A stretch of DNA of 64,000 nucleotides, taken from Guillardia theta CCMP2712 (taxonomy: Eukaryota; Protista; Cryptophyta). Where the stretch lies: assembly GCF_000315625.1 (NCBI RefSeq), contig NW_005434602.1, positions 367,848 to 431,847 on the forward strand, given 5' to 3'. Every line of letters begins with the position of its first letter. Position 1 is the stretch's first letter. Position numbers and translations under genes: made by a program. Shown here piece by piece: positions 44,197 to 57,230 of this stretch. A model generated the notes under the pieces. It ran no database searches and was not told the DNA's origin. It saw only the letters and a list, made by a program, of their open reading frames with translations.

Positions 44197-45315
44197 GTGG
44201 ATCGGATGGAGGGAGTACACCTGACTCTGTTCAGCGAGGACCCGAAGATCAGAGAGGCGCTCGCAGTCGAGCTGACAGCTGACAGCTTCGTGTCTAGGAA
44301 CAAGCTCAAGAAGGCAGCAAGGATGCAGAAGAAGAAGGCAAGCCGCAGAGACGACAAGGAGATGAAGATCATCATCAAGTCGACGGCAGCATCTGGTCGC
44401 TTCACGAGGAAGGAGATGGAGGGGCTGTGCAACGGCGGCAACACGTCCATGGCAAGAGTCAAGAGAGTCTTGTTGGAGATCGCAAACAGGCTTGACATCA
44501 AAGTTGACGGAATTGACATGGAGGAGGATTTGAACACCAAGTCCTGGAACGGGTCGAAGCTATGCATCTTCCTCGGCTCCACGGACGATGCTCGACGCAT
44601 GATGAAGGAGCTGCCCTTCTATCTCGAAGGCGCAGCAACCAAGCTCGAAGCAGTCGGCTTCGACAGGGAGCCTGAGGCAGCTGGTCAGCGGGGCACCAGC
44701 GACGCAGCGCAGCGACAGGCGGAGAGCGAGGGAGAGTGGCTGGAGTTTACAGGCCTGGAGAGGATCACAATGGAGGCAGCATCTCCGTCAAGCCAAGAGG
44801 ACATGCAGCTCGTCAGCGAGCTGTCAGCAGTCATCGAAGATGCAGCTTCTCTGAACGAGACGGGGACGAGCGAGCCGATCAAGCTGGTCTTGGACAAGGC
44901 CGTTGGCAACCTCCACGACACCTTCTACTCTCCGGGGAGCCTGGAGTTCATGTCGCTGGGAGAGTGGGCGAAGACGCCAGAGGAGCAGGGAGTGGGACGC
45001 AACGTTCTCAAGGAGAAGCTAGCGGAGTGGTTGCACAGCAAGCGCTGGACTCGCGTGCAAGGACCACGGGCAACGGCAGCTGCTGAGCTTGAGCAGGAGG
45101 CGGAGAGCGACGACATAGAGCGTCGATCTCTTAGCTTCCTGTTCATAGCACTGAGTAAATTCGCAGAGATGCATGTGCTGGCCTGCTCGCTGAAGGTGGA
45201 CAAGAAGGACCGACTGCGGGTGGAGATGAGGGAAGATGACGAAGAAGAGGAAGACATGGAAGAAGAGCAAGGCGAGGGCGAGGAAGAAGACGGGGCGAGC
45301 CCGTACCGAGCTTGA
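44197..45315 (+). CDS. Hypothetical protein of a locally duplicated family (copy 1; frame open upstream to ~43975)
   Basis: STxRFxRKEME.LC.GGNTS and RITMEAASPS...LHDTF.SPG..EFM.LG.WA motifs shared with 53499..54908. Confidence 0.6.
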   Translation: MDRMEGVHLTLFSEDPKIREALAVELTADSFVSRNKLKKAARMQKKKASRRDDKEMKIIIKSTAASGRFTRKEMEGLCNGGNTSMARVKRVLLEIANRLDIKVDGIDMEEDLNTKSWNGSKLCIFLGSTDDARRMMKELPFYLEGAATKLEAVGFDREPEAAGQRGTSDAAQRQAESEGEWLEFTGLERITMEAASPSSQEDMQLVSELSAVIEDAASLNETGTSEPIKLVLDKAVGNLHDTFYSPGSLEFMSLGEWAKTPEEQGVGRNVLKEKLAEWLHSKRWTRVQGPRATAAAELEQEAESDDIERRSLSFLFIALSKFAEMHVLACSLKVDKKDRLRVEMREDDEEEEDMEEEQGEGEEEDGASPYRA

Positions 45316-46199: not shown

Positions 46200-46850
46200 T
46201 GGGCGGGGACTCGGAGTTTCCTACCGTCTGGGTTCCGGGCCGGCGGCCGGCGCCCGGGCCCGCGGCCCGGCCGGGACCGGCCGACTTAGACGGTGAGGCT
46301 CCAGTTTCCTTGCACCCGGGGCCGAGCCTGACTCACAGTAGTACGCTCAGTCTCTCTGACTCAGTGCGGCTTTCAAGTTCCGGGCAGTCACGTTCCTTCA
46401 AGTCCGACGGTCTGACCGTCGGACTCTGCCAGTGACGCGTTGCTCTCAGTTGGATCGAGTCCGAGGCTCAGCCTCGGACTTTGAACGTCGGCGGGCAGTC
46501 ACCAGCCGCTGACTCAGCGGCCCGGCTGAGCCTACTGCCAGGCTCAAACCTGGTCGCCGTCTCACCGTACGGTACGGTCAGTGCCTTCCGACTTCCTTGA
46601 AGTCCGGCGAACTTCGGAAGTTCTACCGTACGACTCTCCTGATTGTCCTCGTACTGATTTTTAACTTAACTTTGAGTAAAGTACACCGTACTACGGTACT
46701 AGTCGTACCGTAACGGTACCCAGAACGGTACCGGGCCGTAGCCTAGCATCCGGGGAGTCCGGCGCGGCGGCCCACTCAGTCCGATCATCCCGGGCCTTTT
46801 CCCCCTCCCCCACCCTGACCGGCTTACCTTCGCGGCGCACGATGCCGCGT
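46200..46850. promoter_or_regulatory. GC-rich island with the conserved 40-nt motif (46642-46681), upstream of the Roco gene
   Basis: Motif identical to 25704-25743. Confidence 0.45.
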
Positions 46851-47134
46851 TACTGTCCTTGCTGCCAGGCAAGGGAGCAACTGCGATGAGATGCTGTTAC
46901 CTTCACTTCCATACTTGATGGAGATGCTTGCGTTGCTCCCCCACATCTTCTTCTCTTGATCATCCACTTCCTCTATTGGCGGCTCCTCTCAGTTCACACT
47001 TGCGGCACAAAGATGACCTCCTGACTCGAATACTGCAGATCGAGATCGATCCTGGTACCGGCGACAGCACGAAATGCGTAATTTGAGTAGCTCCTTGATG
47101 CTGTTATCTGACTTTTTGTCTTGAATGTTATGCC

Positions 47135-50100
47135 ATGGGTTGCCATGTTCTTGTTCGGAAGGCGGTAAGCTTAGCTGGAGCCGATGGAGAGTGCAAGACC
47201 TGCTCGAAGCTTAAAAAAGATCATTATGGATCTTCCATGTACTGCTACGTAAGGAACCGTTCGCTCAGGGGATGATTTGACTGACATTTGATTTTGCGAT
47301 ATCTTTTGTTCTGCTCGCATGGACTGCTGGTGGATCGTATAGCGAGTAAGTATTTTGATCGAAATATGCGGTCACCAGGGGATATTTCGCTGACATTTGA
47401 TTTTGCGATTTCTTTTGGTTTCTGCTCGGATGGGCTGTGAATGGGGCTGCGGATAGTTTGTAAGTATCATGATCGAAATATGCGGTCAGTGGATGATTTG
47501 CTGACTATTTTATTTTGCGATATCTTTTGTTGCTGCTCGGATGGGATGTTGATGGGGCTGGATAGGGAGTAAGTATCTTGCTTGCCAAAAAAATGATGCG
47601 GTCAGGGGCTGATTTGACTGACATTTGATTTTGCGATTTCCTTTGTTTCTGCTCGGATGGACTTCTGGTGGATCGGATAGCGAGTAAGTATCTTGATCGA
47701 AATATGCGGTCCAATCAGGGGATGATTGGACTGACATGTATTTTGAAAATCTTATCGCTTTTTTGCTTGGATGGATGGAATGTTGCTGGACAGGTGGTAA
47801 GTGACGAATATTCAAGATGCACTCAGGGAACGATTGGCTGACATAATTTCGTGTATTGTTTTTCGATTTCTCATCGGATTGGTGGTTGGTTGGGCTGGCT
47901 AGGTGGTAAGTTAGAATCATGAAATATGCGGTCAGGGGACGATTTGCTGACATTTGATTTTGCGGTTTCTTTTGTTGCTGCTCGGATGGGATGTTGATGG
48001 GGCTGGATAGGAAGTAAGTATCTTGCTTGAAATGATGCGGTCAGGGGCTGATTTGACTGACATTTGATTTTGCGATATCTTTTGTTTCTGCTCGGATGGG
48101 TTTCGGGATCGGATAGTATGTAAGTATCTTACTTGCCAAAAAAATGATGCGGTCAGGGGACGATTTGCTGACATTTGATTTTGCGATTTCCTTTGTTTCT
48201 GCTCCGATGGGCTGCTGATGGGACTGGATAGGTGGTAAGTTTATTGTTGAACAATACGGTCAGGGGGTGATTTCGCTGACATTTGATTTTGCGATATCTT
48301 TTGTTTCTGCTCGGATGGGTTGCGGGATCGGATAGTATGTAAGTATCTTGTTTGAAATGATGCGGTCAGGGTATGATTTCGCTGACATTGGTTTTGTATT
48401 TCTCTGTGTTTGGTGTGGGATGGATGGGTTTTTCAATCGGATAGACGGTAAGTATCTTGATCAAAATATGCGGTCATGGAACGATTGGCTGACATGTTCT
48501 TGTGTTTTTATTGGTTTTTCATCGAATGCGCTGCTCGTGGGTCTGGATAGCCGGTAAGTGACGATTATGAACGATGCGCTCAGGGGATGTTTCGCTGACG
48601 TTGGTTTTGCGATTTCTTTTGTTCCTGCTCTGATTGGCTGTGAATGGGGCTGGATAGGATGTAAGTATCTTGATTGACATGATGCGGTCAGGGTATGATT
48701 TAGCTAACAATTAGTTTTGTTCATTTCAGTGCTGCATATGCTACTTGGACAATGAGTCTGAAGAGAGAAGGCAAGAACGCATGTGTAAGCACTGCAAGGA
48801 GCGCCGTTCTTGTATGCACCGTCTTGAGCAAGAGCTGGTATCCGCAAGGCTCAGCAGGCAGGACGCCATCGCCAAGATCGAGGAGGTCCGCAAGCACATC
48901 GACAACCTAGGGAAGCCTTTTGCCAAGAGGCTGGACCTTGTCAAGTGTCACTACATCTTCGGGAAGCAAGAGTTAGAGCCTTCTGCTGTGGATGAGATGA
49001 AGCAGCTACTGGTGGGCGGAGAGCTCGGGAGCTGCTACGACAGCAAGGAGGGCAAGCTCGACATGTCTTTGCGCACAGATAGGATGAAACGATATGTGAT
49101 ACGAGATCTGAGGATGAAGAGCCTCCCTGGCTGGATCTCCAAGCTCGGAATTGCATTTCAAGTCATTGACGTGTCTGGTAACCCCAGCCTCTCCCGCCTT
49201 CCCCTGGTTGAGCTGTGCAGCATGGAGTCTAGTCTGAAGAAGGTGAAGTGCGACAGCTGCGTTAGGCTGCAGCTGCCTCCGCCTGAGATCGCCAGTCAGG
49301 GAGGAGAAGCTTCGTTGACGTACCTGAAGAGCGTCAAGAAAGACAGCGAAGCAAACAAGCGGATCAATCTTATTTTGATCGGCAACGGGGAGGCGGGCAA
49401 GACGAGCGTGTTGGAAGCTCTGAGGTCCAAGGACGGAAGAGCTGGCAAGATCGATGTCGACAATAGAACGATCGGGATAGATCTGCATAGGTGGGAACCT
49501 GAAGATGCTGACGGGCTGACGTTCGACGTGATGGACTTTGGGGGGCAACAGATCTACGCCAAGACCAACCAGTACTTCATCGTGAGGCGGGCCTTGTACT
49601 TGCTGGTGTGGAGCGTGATGCCGTTATCAGACATTCAGACTGACACAGAAGTCGGGACATACGTGGACAAGCTGAAGGCGATGATCTCCACTTGGTTGCG
49701 AGCAATGCAGGCGAGAGTGCCGGGGGCGAGTGTCCTGCTGGTAGCGACGCACATTGACTTGGCCGAGCAGCTTGAGGTGAAAGATCAGTGTGAGGAGGTG
49801 AGGCGATGTGTGGAACAGGAGCTGAAGAAGATGTCGGAGGAGGAAGACGAGAACATCCTTCCGTTGCGCGTCATACGCGAAGGCGCGAGCTTCACGGTGG
49901 ACTGCTTGAAGGGGGACGGAATCAAGGGACTGCGAGATTCTGTGTGCATGGCGGCGAAGGGGATGCTGTGGTGGAATGAGACCATACCTCGACCTTATCT
50001 AACTTTGCGAAAGGATGTCGAGCAACTGGCAAAGACTAAACCTTACACCAATGCAAAGCATTTCTTGTGGATGGTGAACAAAGCAGGGGTGAGCACCAAC

Positions 50101-52704
50101 GAGGTGAAGGTGGTGACGAGCTTCCTACATGACATGGGAGTGATCAAGTACTTTGGTCATGACATGAAGGAAAATCAAGCCCAGCCAGACAAGGGCAAGT
50201 ACTCAATCGAAGACACCATCTTCATCGATCCCGTGTGGATGATCGACGTGTTCAAGGGCGTGATGCGACACGATTGGCAGCACCTCCTCAACTTCTTTCG
50301 ACAGGACCCGAGCAAGTCCAAGAAGACAAAGAAGCTGCTTCATCTCGGCATCGTAGACGAAGACATGTTTGAATACCTGTGGCCCCAAGAAGGCAGTGAT
50401 TTCTGGGAGAGTACTAACAACACGCTGCTATCGTCCGGATTTACAAGAACCCATCTGAATGTGCAGCAGGCCGTCGCTCTCCTGCGGGGCTGCGATCTTG
50501 CGCACTTTCTTGCAGCAAGTGAAACTTCTGATGGTGAAACTTCTGAAGGCAAGCATAAAGAGTGGGAGCTTCTTTGTCCCGGCATCATCCCTCCTTTCGC
50601 ACATCAGCACAGGCTAGCAGTGAAGGAGTCCCATTCTTTGTGTGTGCATGTCGAGTGCCAGTACAACATCTTCCCCGCAGGCTTCACCGACAGGCTGGTC
50701 GTGCTCTGTGCCGCTCGGCATTTCGAGGTAGACTGCAGCGGTACGATGGCGGTGATGAAGGGCTGGGGGCGAACGCTCCTGGTAAGCTGGAGTGAAGATG
50801 AAGACAAGCATACGTTGATAGCTCATGCGTCGACGAAGAAACAGATCGAAAACTTTGAAGAGGACTTGAAGCAACTGGAGGCGTTCTTCCCGGGAATGAT
50901 TCGCAGGAGACGAGAAGAGAAAACCTCAGGCGAGGAGGTAGTGCAGGTTGGGATCTTCGCATATGGCGAAAAGTCAAGTAAATGTGCTAGGGATATCCAA
51001 GAGAAGATCAAATGCATCTACCGAAAAAATAGCATTCCTCTGGAACACTCTTCTGTCGTCTATGTCAGTGATGATAGCAACGCACAGCGTCCTCCTAATT
51101 GCCTTGTGAATATCTTGTGCATCTCGAATGAGAGCGAAGGGAGCAAGACTACAGAAAACAAATTCTTTCAGTTGTGGAACGAGCTGACCGCCAGCAGAGC
51201 TATGATCATTCCTGTTGTTCTCGCGGACTATCAGATCAGGAACTATGACAAGTGGTGGCCTGAGGGCATCGCTGGAATGGAGCGGTACAAGATCTTCCAC
51301 AAGTACGAGGCGAATGACAAATCAATGCAGTTGCTGTACAACACGATTATTCAGAAGTTGCATCAAGGGCAAGAAAGCGACGATGACATATCGTCTGTCA
51401 CTAGTCAGAATAGGCTCCTGTGCGAAGATTGCTTGCATGAAATCTCTGTATCAGGAGACGTTGGTGAGTACAACCTTCCGCAAGCTAATCAGGGAATTGA
51501 CAAACAAGACGTCATGACACGTCAACAAAGATTCTTGACGTGCACAAAGGATCGTCATCACAGAGAGCTGAAGGATGTGCTAAAGTTCAACAGCTCTTGC
51601 TCCCCCTGTCCTTCCTGCTTGAAGCAAAAGAAGGTGCCACATTTCTTCCCCCGACCCACGTGCTTGACCAAGCTTGCTCGCGAGCTGACGGCTAAGATCT
51701 TCTGCCCTGGTTGTTCCAAGGACGTGAACGTCCTCGATGTCACTCCTCCGCAAGTGTTCTTGAGCTACAATTGGGGAACAAACAACTCGACGCAGGAGAT
51801 GGTGAGGCAAGTGAAACGGATGATCGAAGAGGAGACAAGCTTGCAGTGTTGGTTCGATGTGGAGGGAGGGATCAATGCGGGAGAGGACCACGTAAAAAAC
51901 ATGGAGCTCGGAGTATCTCGTTGCGAGCTGTTCATCCTCTTCATGAGCCACAAGTACGTCAAGAGTGCAAACTGCAGGAGAGAGTACGTGCGCGCATGTG
52001 AAGCAGGGAAGTACATCATCCCGGTGTTTGTTCCGGTCCTCTTCAAAGAAGCATCAGATTCGGAGTCAGGCTGGAGGGGCGACAAGGGCAAAGAATGGTG
52101 GAAGTCGATTGCTGATGTTGAAGGCAAAGCCGCTGAAGGAAATAAGGTTGATTGGAATCATCTCAAGCACTTTCCCAAGACTTTCAACCTCTCAGCTGGA
52201 GGAGGAACAGATGAGATTCAAGTTTTAGGCGTCGAGGAGCTCGTCGCTGCTGTGCAAGCAAGAGTTTACAGGGGAGACACTGTCTTCCATGAGGTGATTC
52301 ATGCTATTCTCTCTTGATGCGAATATTGCTAACGCGGATGACAGGAGGCGCAGGAGGAAGGAGAGAAACGGAGACCGAAGAAGGTGCTGGACAGAGCAGA
52401 CCATTTCCTGTATGAGTTTAGACGTCTGGATCTGAATGGTAAGGACTTGTGGAAAAGTGGTTTTAGTTGACGATGGAGAAGGTGATGGAGAATTGAGTGC
52501 CGATGAACTGTTTGAGGGTCTCAGGTTTAGGATGTCACAGGATGAGGTGTCGAGGCTCTTCGATTGCATGGTAGGAAGTTTGTTCGTCCGCGTTGTGATG
52601 TTGACACGTACTGACTATGAAAGGACGCAAATGGTGATGGGAGAATTTCCATGGAAGAGTTTATTGATGCTAGAAAGAAGATGATCGAAGATACAATTTT
52701 GTGA
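47135..52704 (+). CDS. Roco-family protein: MGC N-terminus, Cys/His region with microexon-encoded segment, short LRR, ROC GTPase, COR, TIR-like, Cys-rich, TIR, 2 EF-hands
   Basis: Exons 47135-47248, 13 x 3-nt, 48730-52293, 52345-52438, 52482-52570 and 52624-52704. ROC motifs GNGEAGKTS, TIGID, DFGGQ, THID; TIR VFLSYNW..CWFD..SANCRRE; EF loops DLNGDGELSADE and DANGDGRISMEE are each formed by splicing. Confidence 0.85.
47249..48729 (+). repeat. Tandem array of ~105-115-bp units = homologous introns flanking 13 three-nucleotide microexons
   Basis: Each unit reads GTAAG(T)...CTGAC...T-rich...YAG|NNN|GTAAGT. Confidence 0.8.
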
Positions 52705-52754: not shown

Positions 52755-53490
52755 CTAGTCTAAAGAGGCGCGCGAGCACTGGGAGTACACGGCCTACAAT
52801 GCGAACCCTGTTTCTGAGGTCTCTTTCTACTTTCTACTTCTGCTGTCTTCTCTTGGCTTCCTCAGCCTCAGTCAGGAGAGTTGCCTCTCCTCCCCTTGGC
52901 CTTCAGTCGCCACCTACTCCTCCTCCGTTCAGCTTCCTCAGCCTCAGTCAGGAGAGTTGCCTCTCCTCACCTTGGCCTTCGGTTGCCTCCTACATCCCCT
53001 CCTTACCTTGCTTACCTTGCTGACTCGTCGGTCGCTCTCCGAGTCCCCCTCTTGTCCACCTCTTCTTCGCCGTGATTTCTTGCTTCAAGCTCCGCTCAGC
53101 TCAAGCTCGGTACGGGCTTCTTCATCATCCTCTCCATGCATCTCTGCGAATTTACTCCTTGCCTTCCTGCTGTCTCCTTCAAGCGGCACGCGAGTCCAGT
53201 GCTTGCTGTGCAACCACTCCGCTAGCTTCTCCTTGAGCGCATTGCGTCCCACTCCCTGCTCCTCTGGCGTCTTCGCCCACTCTCCCAGCGACATGAACTC
53301 CAGGCTCCCTGGAGAGTAGAAGGTGTCGTAGAGGTTGCTCGTTCGTCCCTCGGTCACGAGCTGCATGTCCTCTTGGCTTGACGGAGATGCTGCCTCCATT
53401 GTGATCCTCTCCAGGTCTGTAAACTCCAGCCATTCTCCCTCGCTCTCCTCCTGCCGCTGAGCGTCGCCAGCGCCCCGCTGACCAGCCTGA
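52755..53490 (-). pseudogene. Inverted, internally deleted copy of 44680-45579
   Basis: Reverse complement of the 3' part and 3' flank of the 44197 gene, ending at ...CTCTTTAGACTAG. Confidence 0.8.
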
Positions 53491-53498
53491 GGTCAAGC

Positions 53499-54908
53499 AT
53501 GAGCACAGGCCGCTTCTCGAGGAAGGAGATGGAAGCGCTGTGCGGAGGAGGTAACACATCGATCACGAGAGTCAAGCGAGCCATGTTGGAGTTAGCAAGA
53601 AGAATGAACCTCAAGCTGGTCAGCGTCGAGGTCGAGGAGGATCGTGACACGCTCAGCTGGGATGGGAGCCTGATAGCTCTCTCCCTGGCGACCAAGGCAG
53701 AGGCTCGACGCATGATGGAAGGCATCCCCTTCTACTTGGAAGGGATCCTGGAAGTCAAGCTCGAAGCTGTAGGTTTCAAGCTCAGCTCTCAGCATGAGGA
53801 GGAGAGCGAGGAGCAAGCCCAAGAGTCCCAAGGGCAGCAGCAAGGCGCTGGATGGCTGGAGCTCAGCGACATCGACAGGATCACCATGGAAGCAGCGTCG
53901 CCGTCAGGGCCAGTCGATCAACAGGTCTTGCTCGACCTCTCGACGATGCTCTTGGAGACATCAGAGGAGGAGCTGCTAGCTGGCAAGCCGATCTCTCTGG
54001 AGCTAGACAAGAGTGTTGGCAAGCTGCATGACACCTTCTGCTCGCCGGGCAACGTGGAGTTCATGACGCTCGGAGCTTGGGCAGCCACGCCGACGTTGGG
54101 ATCGAAGCGAAACATGTTGAAGGAAAAGCTCAGAGCTTACCTCGGCGAGCAGCGCTGGACACGGGTGCAAGGGAATAAGGCAGCGAGGAGGGGCAGCGCC
54201 TTCTCTCCAAGGGCAGCAGCGACTGATGCGCTCGAGCAGGAGGCTGAGAGCGATGACATCGAGAGTCGATCTGTAAGCCTCTTGTTTCTTGCGATCAGTA
54301 AATTTGCTGAGCACCATGGGTTGAGCTGCACGGGCAAGGTCGACAAGCTCGTCAGCGAGCTGCAGCTCGTCAGCGAGCTGTCAGCAGTCATCGAAGATGC
54401 AACTTCTTTGAACGAGGCGGGGACGAGCGAGCCGATCAAGCTGGTCTTGGACAAGGCCGTTGGCAACCTCCACGACACCTTCTACTCTCCGGGGAGCCTG
54501 GAGTTCATGTCGCTGGGAGAGTGGGCGAAGACGCCAGAGGAGCAGGGAGTGGGACGCAACGTTCTCAAGGAGAAGCTAGCGGAGTGGTTGCACAGCAAGC
54601 GCTGGACTCGCGTGCAAGGAGACAGCAAGAAGGCAAGGAGGGGCAGCGCGTTCTCGCCACGGGCAACGGCAGCTGCTGAGCTTGAGCAGGAGGCGGAGAG
54701 CGACGACATAGAGCGTCGATCTCTTAGCTTCCTGTTCATAGCACTGAGTAAATTCGCAGAGATGCATGTGCTGGCCTGCTCGCTGAAGGTGGACAAGAAG
54801 GACCGACTGCGGGTGGAGATGAGGGAAGATGACGAAGAAGAGGAAGACATGGAGGAAGAGCAAGGCGAGGGCGAGGAAGGAGACGGGACGAGCCCGTACC
54901 GAGCTTGA
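53499..54908 (+). CDS. Chimeric/5'-truncated copy of the 44197 family with two tandem domain units
   Basis: First unit is a diverged paralog; second unit (54363-54908) is near-identical to 44804-45315. Confidence 0.6.
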   Translation: MSTGRFSRKEMEALCGGGNTSITRVKRAMLELARRMNLKLVSVEVEEDRDTLSWDGSLIALSLATKAEARRMMEGIPFYLEGILEVKLEAVGFKLSSQHEEESEEQAQESQGQQQGAGWLELSDIDRITMEAASPSGPVDQQVLLDLSTMLLETSEEELLAGKPISLELDKSVGKLHDTFCSPGNVEFMTLGAWAATPTLGSKRNMLKEKLRAYLGEQRWTRVQGNKAARRGSAFSPRAAATDALEQEAESDDIESRSVSLLFLAISKFAEHHGLSCTGKVDKLVSELQLVSELSAVIEDATSLNEAGTSEPIKLVLDKAVGNLHDTFYSPGSLEFMSLGEWAKTPEEQGVGRNVLKEKLAEWLHSKRWTRVQGDSKKARRGSAFSPRATAAAELEQEAESDDIERRSLSFLFIALSKFAEMHVLACSLKVDKKDRLRVEMREDDEEEEDMEEEQGEGEEGDGTSPYRA

Positions 54909-55671: not shown

Positions 55672-57230
55672 TTCTGGAAGCGAAGTGGTTGATTCATGAC
55701 CTCGAAACAAGGAAGAGGAGGAAAGAAACCTCAGCCGGAAAGGAGCCCTCAACCTCGATCTAAGCAATCAGGAGCATTTCAAACAGAAATTGCTGAAGAG
55801 AGTTCTGAGGAAGAAGTCGAATGGAGCGAGCGGCTGCAGCTGCAGCAGCAGCAGCTTTCTCCGAGTCAGACCAGTGGATCTTTGACTCAAACTTATAGGG
55901 ATGGAGATGTACAACGTGAAGCGCTGTCTAGCGCGGATCAACGGGCCCGAAACAAGAGGGATACTCCCTTGCGAAGTATTCTGCGATCAGAGGAGGCAAC
56001 TCAGCGAGCAGCCTCCCCTGCAACATCGGTACGTCTGCCAAGCTCGGAAAATTTTTCATCCGACCCCGTCATGTCCTCGCCAGTGGCGCAGGACCGAGCT
56101 CTTCTCCTTCTTCGTCGAATGTGTGCCCTTCTGGCTGACACCATGCAGGACGAGCGTTTCCACATGCTCGCCAATGCTGCCGACGAATTTGCGACAGCCG
56201 ACGCTGCTGCAACACCCGAGCTCCAGCATCTCGCACGGAACGTTACCCTGCTGTAAGATGCTAATGCTGATATCTATTCAGCTGAGGAATCAGCTAGCGC
56301 TGAATCCTCTGATCAGGAACCAGTCCTCTCCAATCGGACTCTCGTGAATGTGCTAACGAACTCCAAGAGTTTCAATGCCAGCCGCATTCCGATGTACAAA
56401 GGTTTTGCTGATCCCCGCTCTGTCGAAGAATTCCTTCGTCAGTGCAACCGCGAATTAATCGCTCAAGAGATCCCAACTCGCAAATGGGTGAAGAGCATCA
56501 CGCCGTTGTTCACCAACGAAGTGATGGTGGTGGTAGAACGTAAGTACGGAAAGAGTCTCGAGGCCATCAACAAGCTTAAATGGGATGAATTTTCAACTCA
56601 TCTAAGTTCGTGTCTAGCCCCGATGCGGCAAGCCAAGAATTATCAGACTCAGCTTGATCAGCTCAAGCAGCAGCCCAACGAATCCGCCTGGGCGTACTTG
56701 ACTCGCGCCACGACACTCTTCGCAACGCTCGAATCGCAGGTAGGGTCAGCCATCCTGTACTTCAACGATCAGCCACTCCGGAAATTCATCAAGGGATTTT
56801 CGCATACGCCGACGCGCACGTCTATCCACACATGGTTTACGATTTATCGCAGTCAGTACGGACACGGAGAAGACATGTTCTCTCGCCTAGTCACTTTCAT
56901 CACAGCTCTTCTGGACGATGGTGAACCGCTAACAGTGTCTAAGCAGCCTAACAATTCAGCTGCTGCTAACGCTGCGCAGACCTCTTCGCACACTAAGGCC
57001 AAAGCTAACGGTGGGCAGAACAAGAAGAAGTCCAACGGTAAAGAAAACCAGCGCAAGCAGAAGTCCATCCGTTGTTTTTACTGTCAAGAACCGGGTCATA
57101 TCAAGCCCGACTGCGAGCAGTACAAGCGCGAAGTCGCCCTCCAGCAGGAGCGCCATGAGAAACTCATGGCAACCCAGCATGAACAGCATGTTCAGCTTTT
57201 AGCTGCTCTTCAACCGCTCGCGACGCGTGC

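Follow-up and report, generated by a model that had tools for sequence, protein, structure and literature searches.

The stretch of DNA analyzed here (hereafter the window) is a 64,000-nucleotide (nt) segment of the genome of the cryptophyte Guillardia theta CCMP2712 (contig NW_005434602.1, positions 367,848 to 431,847 of the forward strand), and the coordinates below are those of the window. On its plus strand lies a gene for a Roc-COR-TIR protein, the 5′ coding region of which is interrupted by an array of 14 homologous introns (69–112 nt) separating 13 microexons of 3 nt each (47249–48729). A script run over the whole window recovers the pattern AG-NNN-GTAAGT 13 times on the plus strand in this region, with 3 nt in every gap between acceptor and donor. 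The triplets are, in genomic order, CGA TTT GGA CGA GTG GTG GAA TAT GTG TAT ACG CCG GAT; positions and letters agree with an initial annotation of this DNA, and none is a stop codon. Outside the array a single extra site was found on the two strands, at 56535, so the clustering of the 13 is not a matter of chance. Tandem Repeats Finder describes the array as 13.2 copies of a 109-bp unit (70% match) and also gives a higher-order period of 329 bp. When the units are aligned, GTAAG, a branch-like CTGAC and GATAG show little or no variation, and the acceptor AG and the donor GTAAG(T) are the same in all 13 units. The triplet makes up the sole three columns lacking any consensus, which bears out the initial observation that it varies while the splice signals stay fixed.

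Splicing of the array can be followed in public sequence data. Nineteen sequencing runs were considered and four were aligned to 46300–49800; those guessed to be RNA contain ~0.2–0.36 of the words of 47100–49100, a stretch with an exonic share of ~0.26. Run X11 is DNA-like, with low-depth contigs collinear with the array. Runs X1 and X2, which come from different studies, are RNA-like, with GT..AG joints and zero coverage over several array introns and over intergenic DNA. The raw-read RNA run X15 placed 30 reads, all on a repeated ~40-nt element near 46640–46680 and none on the gene. Combined, the contigs of X1 and X2 contain exon 3, all 13 triplets in genomic order and the last exon. Each of the 14 short introns is spliced out separately, the 13 codons are all included in order, and the triplets are, as first proposed, in-frame expressed microexons.

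The individual junctions are as follows, all on the plus strand. Past the end of exon 3 at 47248, an X1 contig reads CGATTTGGACGAGT, which corresponds to microexons 1–4 and the start of microexon 5. This loose end identifies microexon 1 (CGA, R; 47343–47345) and microexon 2 (TTT, F; 47457–47459), the latter also delimited by the X2 joint 47460>47681. The same joint, which has ‘GA’ between its sides, and the X1 loose ends identify microexon 3 (GGA, G; 47566–47568). Contigs of X1 and X2 that match from 47681 have the end of exon 3 and CGA TTT GGA in front, and this places microexon 4 (CGA, R; 47681–47683). Microexon 5 (GTG, V; 47794–47796) is seen at the joint 47798>48117, present in X1 and X2 with ‘GGAA’ between its sides. 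Microexon 6 (GTG, V; 47903–47905) is supported by this joint and by the X1 joint 47906>48550, which carries AATATGTGTATAC between its sides, and the GAA of microexon 7 (E; 48011–48013) is among the letters inside both. Microexon 8 (TAT, Y; 48117–48119) appears at the joint 47798>48117 and within AATATGTGTATAC in X1. Clean GT..AG excisions are given by the joints 48233>48335, 48446>48550 and 48660>48730, each found in X1 and X2. The first of these, together with the X2 joint 48234>48550 (with ‘TATAC’ between its sides), supports microexon 9 (GTG, V; 48232–48234) and microexon 10 (TAT, Y; 48336–48338), the second supports microexon 11 (ACG, T; 48445–48447) and the third microexon 13 (GAT, D; 48658–48660). 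Microexon 12 (CCG, P; 48551–48553) is supported by the joints ending at 48550, and its junction with microexon 13 is indirect: the last-exon contigs start 4 letters 5′ of 48730, as expected where the spliced CCG-GAT and the retained ..TAG-GAT paths diverge at a GGAT branch point.

The contigs traverse four to seven successive microexons unbranched. They end only where a path with a retained intron splits off, as it does after ..CGAGT and 4 nt before 48730. No exon-skipping joint is present in the X1 and X2 contigs, an assembly form that drops rare variants, and no direct joint from 47248 to 48730 occurs in the contigs of the two studies. Searched with up to two mismatches allowed, the 87-Mb assembly contains no copy of a 30-nt spliced string that runs from exon 3 through microexons 1–7. 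The contigs therefore do not derive from a processed genomic copy, and a processed pseudogene is ruled out as their source.

Some contigs retain a single array intron, namely 47684–47793, 48120–48231, 48339–48444 or 48554–48657, at depths of ~9–12 compared with 16–23 for the adjacent exon contigs; intron 47797–47902 is also retained, at low depth. In these contigs the neighboring introns are already gone, and each single-intron retention leads to a premature stop. The most strongly retained array intron is 47684–47793. It has an extended stem (GGTCCAATCA / TGATTGGAC) immediately 5′ of its CTGAC branch motif where the other units have merely a 5-bp GTCAG/CTGAC stem, and this extended stem may slow its removal, its fold z-score of −1.8 not being significant. 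Folds of six array introns were no better than those of shuffled sequences (z +0.4 to −1.8), and the array region matched no Rfam family at E up to 1.

Upstream of the array, two small 5′ exons were found by aligning the upstream DNA of seven paralogous loci. The coding part of exon 1 (46842–46868) starts with ATG 46842 and encodes MPRYCPCCQ, in which MP..C..CQ is conserved in six paralogues; the X2 contig joint 46865>47036, ambiguous by 3 bases, is compatible with 46868 as the last base of the exon. Intron 1 (46869–47038; 170 nt) is a GC..AG intron (GCAAGG...TGCAG) crossed by one X2 contig with a side of only 20 nt, and GCAAGG also stands directly 3′ of the conserved exon 1 in paralogues. Exon 2 (47039–47077; IEIDPGTGDSTKC) is conserved in paralogues and bounded by RNA-contig joints. 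It is followed by intron 2 (47078–47161; GT..AG, 84 nt), excised by the joint 47077>47162 in X1 (depth 22.7) and X2. The start codon given in the initial annotation, ATG 47135 (MGCHV...), lies inside this intron and is spliced out in the contigs of both studies. The upstream exon described there does end at 47248 but starts at 47162.

Exon 3 (47162–47248; 87 nt) is defined by contiguous contig coverage and paralogue comparison. It starts with GCG, continues with a 10-nt intron remnant, GTAAGCTTAG, that is now coding, and ends with a conserved cysteine exon (..ECKTCSKLKKDHYGSSMYCY). In paralogues the GCG found at 47162 is a separate, conserved first microexon with a normal intron after it. In the window (47162–47174) the remnant is too short to splice, is coding in the RNA contigs and is fused to the cysteine exon (..ECK.CSKL.KDH....YCY). 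The cysteine exon sits mid-array in several paralogues, and the window gene has lost the first sub-array, which its paralogues keep between GCG and the cysteine exon.

The last exon (48730–52317) comprises 1195 codons and a stop, starts with CCICY..MCKHCKERRSC and is defined by its open reading frame, Pfam matches and RNA coverage. Pfam places Roc at ~49369–49758 (4.2e-12) and COR-A at ~49987–50394 (7.4e-09) and TIR_2 at ~51754–52035 (1.7e-14; residues 1009–1102 of the last exon), all three above the cut-off. COR-B is weak and below the cut-off, and nothing is recognized in the first 200 residues encoded by this exon. The gene is thus a Roco-TIR gene, as its first reading had it. The spliced frame is open for 1259 amino acids; 39 of its 3777 coding nucleotides are microexonic, and the domains all lie on one 3588-nt exon. 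Once spliced, the array contributes RFGRVVEYVYTPD between the cysteine-rich motifs ..MYCY and CCICY.., within an N-terminus that displays the motifs CxxC .. KC .. CxxC..H..C .. CCxC .. CxHC..C.H. The nearest proteins are hypothetical proteins of G. theta CCMP2712, with homologs also in Hanusia phi transcriptomes. In G. theta the annotated models take internal methionines as their starts (MCQHCK.., or just before CCVCY) and consequently omit the arrays and the 5′ exons; with their internal-methionine starts, neither these models nor the H. phi transcriptome homologs are informative on the N-terminus.

Two repeated features neighbor the gene. Just upstream of its start, at 46638–46681, is a short, highly repeated element of ~40 nt (..GTACTGATTTTTAACTTAACTTTGAGTAAAG..) that is very deep in all four runs, RNA-like and DNA alike, with different sequence on both sides. 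Near-identical open frames (..SEPIKLVLDKAVGNLHDTFYSPGSLEFMSLGEWAKTPEEQG..) flank the Roco gene at 44197–45315 and 53499–54908 on the plus strand and at 53085–53399 on the minus strand; one frame of the SEPIKLVLDKAVGNLHDTFYSPGSLEFMSLGEWAKTPEEQG type is internally duplicated, and they represent a repeated gene or element family.

The window array is one of many. A two-unit motif with a 3-nt spacer has 119 matches in the G. theta genome in one form and 112 in the other, spread over more than 20 contigs, compared with 0 in reversed controls, and there are no matches genome-wide when the spacer is set to 1–2, 4–5 or 6 nt. With GTGAG donors allowed, the loci analyzed yield at least 200 triplets in at least ~23 arrays of 3 to 19 units each. 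No stop occurs among these 200 triplets compared with 6.6% expected from positional composition (P ~1e-6), and G, Y, R, L, A, N and W are encoded most often. For 164 array introns the mean length is 104 nt, without mod-3 bias, and in-frame read-through is possible for only three of them. A CTRAY motif lies a median of 59 nt upstream of the acceptor, and the dinucleotide AG is depleted 13-fold over the last 53 nt. These are the properties of working introns and not of a minisatellite. When one unit was compared with the genome by BLAST, all 59 matches fell in array loci bar two short stray ones; the unit is accordingly not a dispersed introner.

A genome scan for such arrays, and a check of their association with Roco, TIR or NLR genes, had been proposed at the outset. 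Most arrays lie upstream of Roc-COR-TIR paralogues, the large exon of which starts CC[VI]CY..MCQHCKDRRSC, and across these paralogues the upstream exons are conserved and the microexon number ranges from 9 to 19. Two arrays stand instead before genes with a C.HCK motif and a charged coiled-coil repeat at their start, and the one such gene scanned has a kinase and a PARP catalytic domain. At one locus (L050; contig C234:35000-44999) an array encoding GYGSL.. and a 6-nt TGCTGC exon stand before a coiled-coil/kinase/PARP gene, which is followed by a kinase-RING frame; this gene content indicates that the array module has been combined with different effector domains.

Comparison of units across these loci separates the codon from its surroundings. 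Among pairs of units in which both 60-nt flanks are 85–95% identical, per-site identity in the triplet is ~36%, or 57–61% if best matches alone are counted. Triplet identity in such pairs is bimodal, with either all three bases or none to one of three matching, and units that are 90–95% identical across 120 nt bear unrelated triplets. One class of 18 units from eight loci has near-identical flanks and ten different triplets: nucleotide diversity in this class is 0.64 in the triplet and 0.08–0.095 over 52 flanking positions (~7-fold), and flanking three-column windows all have a diversity of at most 0.31. Simple neutral divergence of duplicated units would not produce so large a contrast. What is required is either diversifying selection acting on the codon, homogenization limited to the intron combined with selection keeping codons different, or a targeted process.

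An analogous architecture is predicted in a second setting. Metagenome contigs were scanned for three consecutive units and at least 120 stretches matched, some of which are plain tandem repeats with an invariant TAA. A set of 39 AT-rich soil metagenome contigs (guanine-plus-cytosine (GC) content 15–26%) has arrays that reach 24 units and vary in their triplets (loci L051-L126, e.g., L105:40-2356; L065:394-3298 on the minus strand; L073; L054). In these contigs no stop occurs among 336 triplets compared with 9% expected from intron composition (P ~1e-14), GC content is 36% in the triplets and 16% in the introns, and diversity is 0.43 in the triplets and 0.11 in the flanks. The spacer is 3 nt in 295 cases, and any other length from 0 to 9 is seen in at most three. 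The triplets are mostly I, L, M, G and T codons, separated by homologous introns of ~94 nt. In contigs that extend far enough, the arrays lie upstream of TKL-type protein kinase genes, with L115, which has a TPR-repeat frame in place of the kinase, as the exception. The named relatives of these kinases are Glomeromycotina proteins (Funneliformis, 65% identity; Rhizophagus, 54–58%). The AT-rich intron unit is unrelated in sequence to that of G. theta, and the one-codon-exon architecture, with putative exons predicted from these contigs, therefore appears to have arisen independently upstream of kinase genes in a fungal-like lineage. Five further loci (L110, L053, L080, L067 and L127) have 3-nt-spaced AG/GTAAGT arrays with GC-richer, unrelated intron units; L110 encodes LFPGIGSGR and L127 has long GCT runs. 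They could represent other lineages with one-codon exons, or plain tandem repeats.

How, then, is the array best understood? The explanation that we favor, and regard as probable, is that the 5′ coding region of this Roc-COR-TIR gene contains 13 one-codon exons, all joined in order, which originated as a tandem cassette and provide germline rather than combinatorial diversity. A founder cassette of ‘intron + 3 nt’ would have been amplified by tandem duplication and unequal recombination. The strict 3-nt spacer would then follow because only multiples of three keep the frame and all units descend from one founder, and duplication with unequal exchange would account for the higher-order repeat and for paralogues having different numbers of units. 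The protein would become one residue longer or shorter whenever a unit is gained or lost. The arrays may encode linkers or loops, variable in length and sequence, in a cysteine-rich and probably metal-binding N-terminal module that heads an expanded signaling or conflict-type family (Roc-COR-TIR, and one kinase-PARP gene). Diversity would arise in the germline among paralogues, with codon turnover much faster than that of the surrounding intron, and combinatorial splicing would not be its source. The initial annotation had attributed diversification to splicing and/or unequal recombination; duplication and unequal recombination fit the variable arrays of the paralogues, and the part assigned to splicing is unsupported.

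In mechanistic terms, every intron of the array is equipped with a strong set of splice signals, comprising the GTAAGT donor, a CTGAC branch site ~59 nt ahead of the acceptor, a tract free of AG and the (G)ATAG acceptor itself. Adjacent introns are probably not engaged simultaneously, with splice sites 3 nt apart, and splicing would be stepwise. Stepwise splicing would explain the abundant RNAs that retain one intron between spliced neighbors.

Several points weigh against this explanation or narrow it. The RNA evidence consists of assembled contigs from runs whose RNA status is a guess from their records, and such contigs give no isoform frequencies and hide rare variants. Support is thin for the junction of microexons 12 and 13 and for intron 1. 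The depths of retained-intron contigs are comparable to those of exon contigs, and much of the RNA may be unproductive. Flank diversity is partly lowered by ascertainment, the 18-unit class having been picked by flank similarity, and could alternatively reflect concerted evolution of the introns and not positive selection on the codon. The cysteine-rich module has no Pfam match, and its metal binding, loop function and immune role are putative; the protein product is likewise predicted, with support at the RNA level. An immune-type role is hinted at only indirectly, by the expanded paralogue family, the hypervariable N-terminus and the TIR or PARP effector-type domains.

A stronger version of the favored explanation treats the architecture as a device for evolvability. 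Introns placed around every residue of a recognition loop would let unequal recombination insert, delete and shuffle codons without risk to the frame, the codons would be under diversifying selection, the arrays of cryptophyte Roco-TIR and kinase-PARP genes and of Glomeromycotina kinase genes would be convergent, and occasional skipping or retention could give stochastic isoforms in addition. We put this forward tentatively, as an idea with somewhat less than an even chance of being right.

Among the alternatives, the one that survives best views the array as a neutral by-product, in which a runaway amplification of intron plus codon is tolerated in a disordered linker, the introns are homogenized and the codons are unconstrained except for stops. 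Paralogues do differ freely in how long the encoded peptides are and in which residues they contain, no domain is recognized in the N-terminal module, and the window gene has lost the whole first sub-array and still appears expressed. However, gene conversion or unequal exchange across both flanks should homogenize the triplet as well, and units 90–95% identical carry unrelated triplets. The apparent independent origin of the architecture upstream of fungal kinase genes, and the maintenance of splice signals and of stop absence over ~200 units, also speak against it. We consider a purely neutral origin unlikely, if well short of negligible.

A second alternative makes the array a regulatory gate: the packed introns would be removed slowly, detained-intron transcripts carrying a premature stop would throttle protein output or make it conditional, and the encoded residues would be secondary. 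Contigs that retain a single intron have depths of ~9–12 beside 16–23 for neighboring exon contigs; every retention creates a premature stop, and the most retained intron is the one with the longest stem beside its branch site. Yet the depth of assembled contigs is a poor measure of isoforms, the fold z-scores are not significant, and a gate leaves both the hypervariable codon and the avoidance of stops in ~200 triplets unexplained. Regulation as the main role of the array appears distinctly unlikely.

The initial annotation raised a third possibility, in which the microexons act as cassette exons and alternative splicing, by taking them up in many combinations, yields as many as 2^13 loop variants from one gene. 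That any subset keeps the frame, as was claimed, can be read directly from the sequence. Splicing of the array is visibly inefficient, as the retention contigs indicate, and some skipping is mechanistically plausible; rare variants would also be suppressed in contigs. Even so, joints and loose ends present consecutive triplets only, with neither skipping nor a 47248>48730 joint in two studies, and contigs cross 4–7 consecutive microexons and break only where the retained-intron path diverges. Low-level skipping may still occur, as contigs drop rare variants, but combinatorial inclusion on the scale envisaged is improbable, and we would give it little weight.

If an ancestral exon had been invaded again and again by a mobile, introner-like element, so that the triplets were remnants of that exon, near-identical introns should stand beside unrelated triplets, and this is what is found. 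Frame-neutral insertion should also leave spacers of 1, 2, 4 and 5 nt, whereas none exists genome-wide. Apart from the two short stray matches, the unit occurs nowhere but in the arrays of these gene families, and no terminal repeats or target duplications were noticed in the units. The strict 3-nt spacer and the confinement to arrays led us to reject this very improbable origin. A single long intron (47249–48729) containing a minisatellite with unused internal AG/GT has in its favor that annotated gene models ignore the region, but stops are avoided, splice signals are conserved and the spliced contigs of two studies carry the triplets in order, on which ground it was rejected as having practically no chance of being correct.

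Arrays of one-codon exons joined in order have partial parallels in several known systems. The exons of schistosome micro-exon genes (MEGs) measure 3–81 bp in mixed sizes, are separated by long, unrelated introns (up to 5 kb) and form most of a small secreted protein that varies by exon skipping (PMC10526429). Shared with the G. theta arrays are runs of very short, frame-symmetric exons, variable segments and lineage-specific, fast-evolving families (PMC10526429). In contrast, the G. theta exons are all 3 nt and are separated by short introns copied in tandem from a single unit, the array forms a small N-terminal part of a 1259-residue intracellular-type protein and no skipping is seen in the contigs. 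Coding sequence that is mostly microexonic, a defining property of MEGs, is not what the window gene has (39 of 3777 nt). Isolated 3-nt microexons are known from Drosophila hth (PMC7392893) and from plants (PMC8831610). They share with the arrays that the spliceosome recognizes 3-nt exons and that annotation usually misses them. Those of animals and plants are isolated, conserved, often placed in long introns and in need of special regulators, whereas G. theta has 13 in a row (up to 19–24 elsewhere), with a variable exon and conserved introns.

Other comparisons concern the mode of splicing or the origin of the units. At recursive (ratchet-point) splice sites the acceptor abuts a regenerated donor and zero nucleotides are left behind. 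The arrays resemble them in having AG closely followed by GTAAGT and in the probably stepwise removal of a long region, but the G. theta spacer is always 3 nt and one codon per step stays in the RNA. Introners, as found in Micromonas, Aureococcus and fungi, are near-identical introns dispersed over unrelated genes. Both systems place many near-identical introns within one genome; the G. theta unit, unlike introners, is confined to tandem arrays in few gene families and keeps a strict 3-nt spacer. The LRR (leucine-rich repeat) cassettes of brown-algal Roco and NB-ARC genes and the exon clusters of Dscam encode whole repeats or domains (~72 nt or more), mutually exclusive in Dscam. In these systems, as here, a putative recognition region in receptor-like proteins is varied through exon cassettes duplicated in tandem, but the G. 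theta cassette is a single codon and all copies are included. The array stands apart from all these systems in having one-codon exons throughout, introns that are tandem copies of a single unit, inclusion of every exon, variability that lies in the exon and a unit that is not scattered over the genome. Full-text searches of the accessible literature turned up no account of arrays like these, whether for Guillardia, for Rhizophagus or more generally.

Exons of 3 nt have been regarded as rare, hard-to-splice curiosities. Thirteen in succession, all of them spliced, show that the spliceosome of an intron-defining organism can repeatedly process splice sites only 3 nt apart, and the array is a natural test case for the order in which introns are removed and for steric constraints on splicing. 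Such arrays also invert the usual pattern of conservation, with conserved introns around a hypervariable exon, and would provide a frame-safe route to changing a protein one residue at a time. Since gene models miss the arrays, the N-termini of such families are mis-annotated, and other genomes probably harbor similar arrays that have gone unseen. Arbuscular mycorrhizal-type fungi possess massively expanded kinase genes. That such arrays head expanded Roc-COR-TIR and kinase-PARP families of an alga, and in analogous form lie upstream of fungal kinases, points to a general and overlooked route for the diversification of receptor-like proteins.

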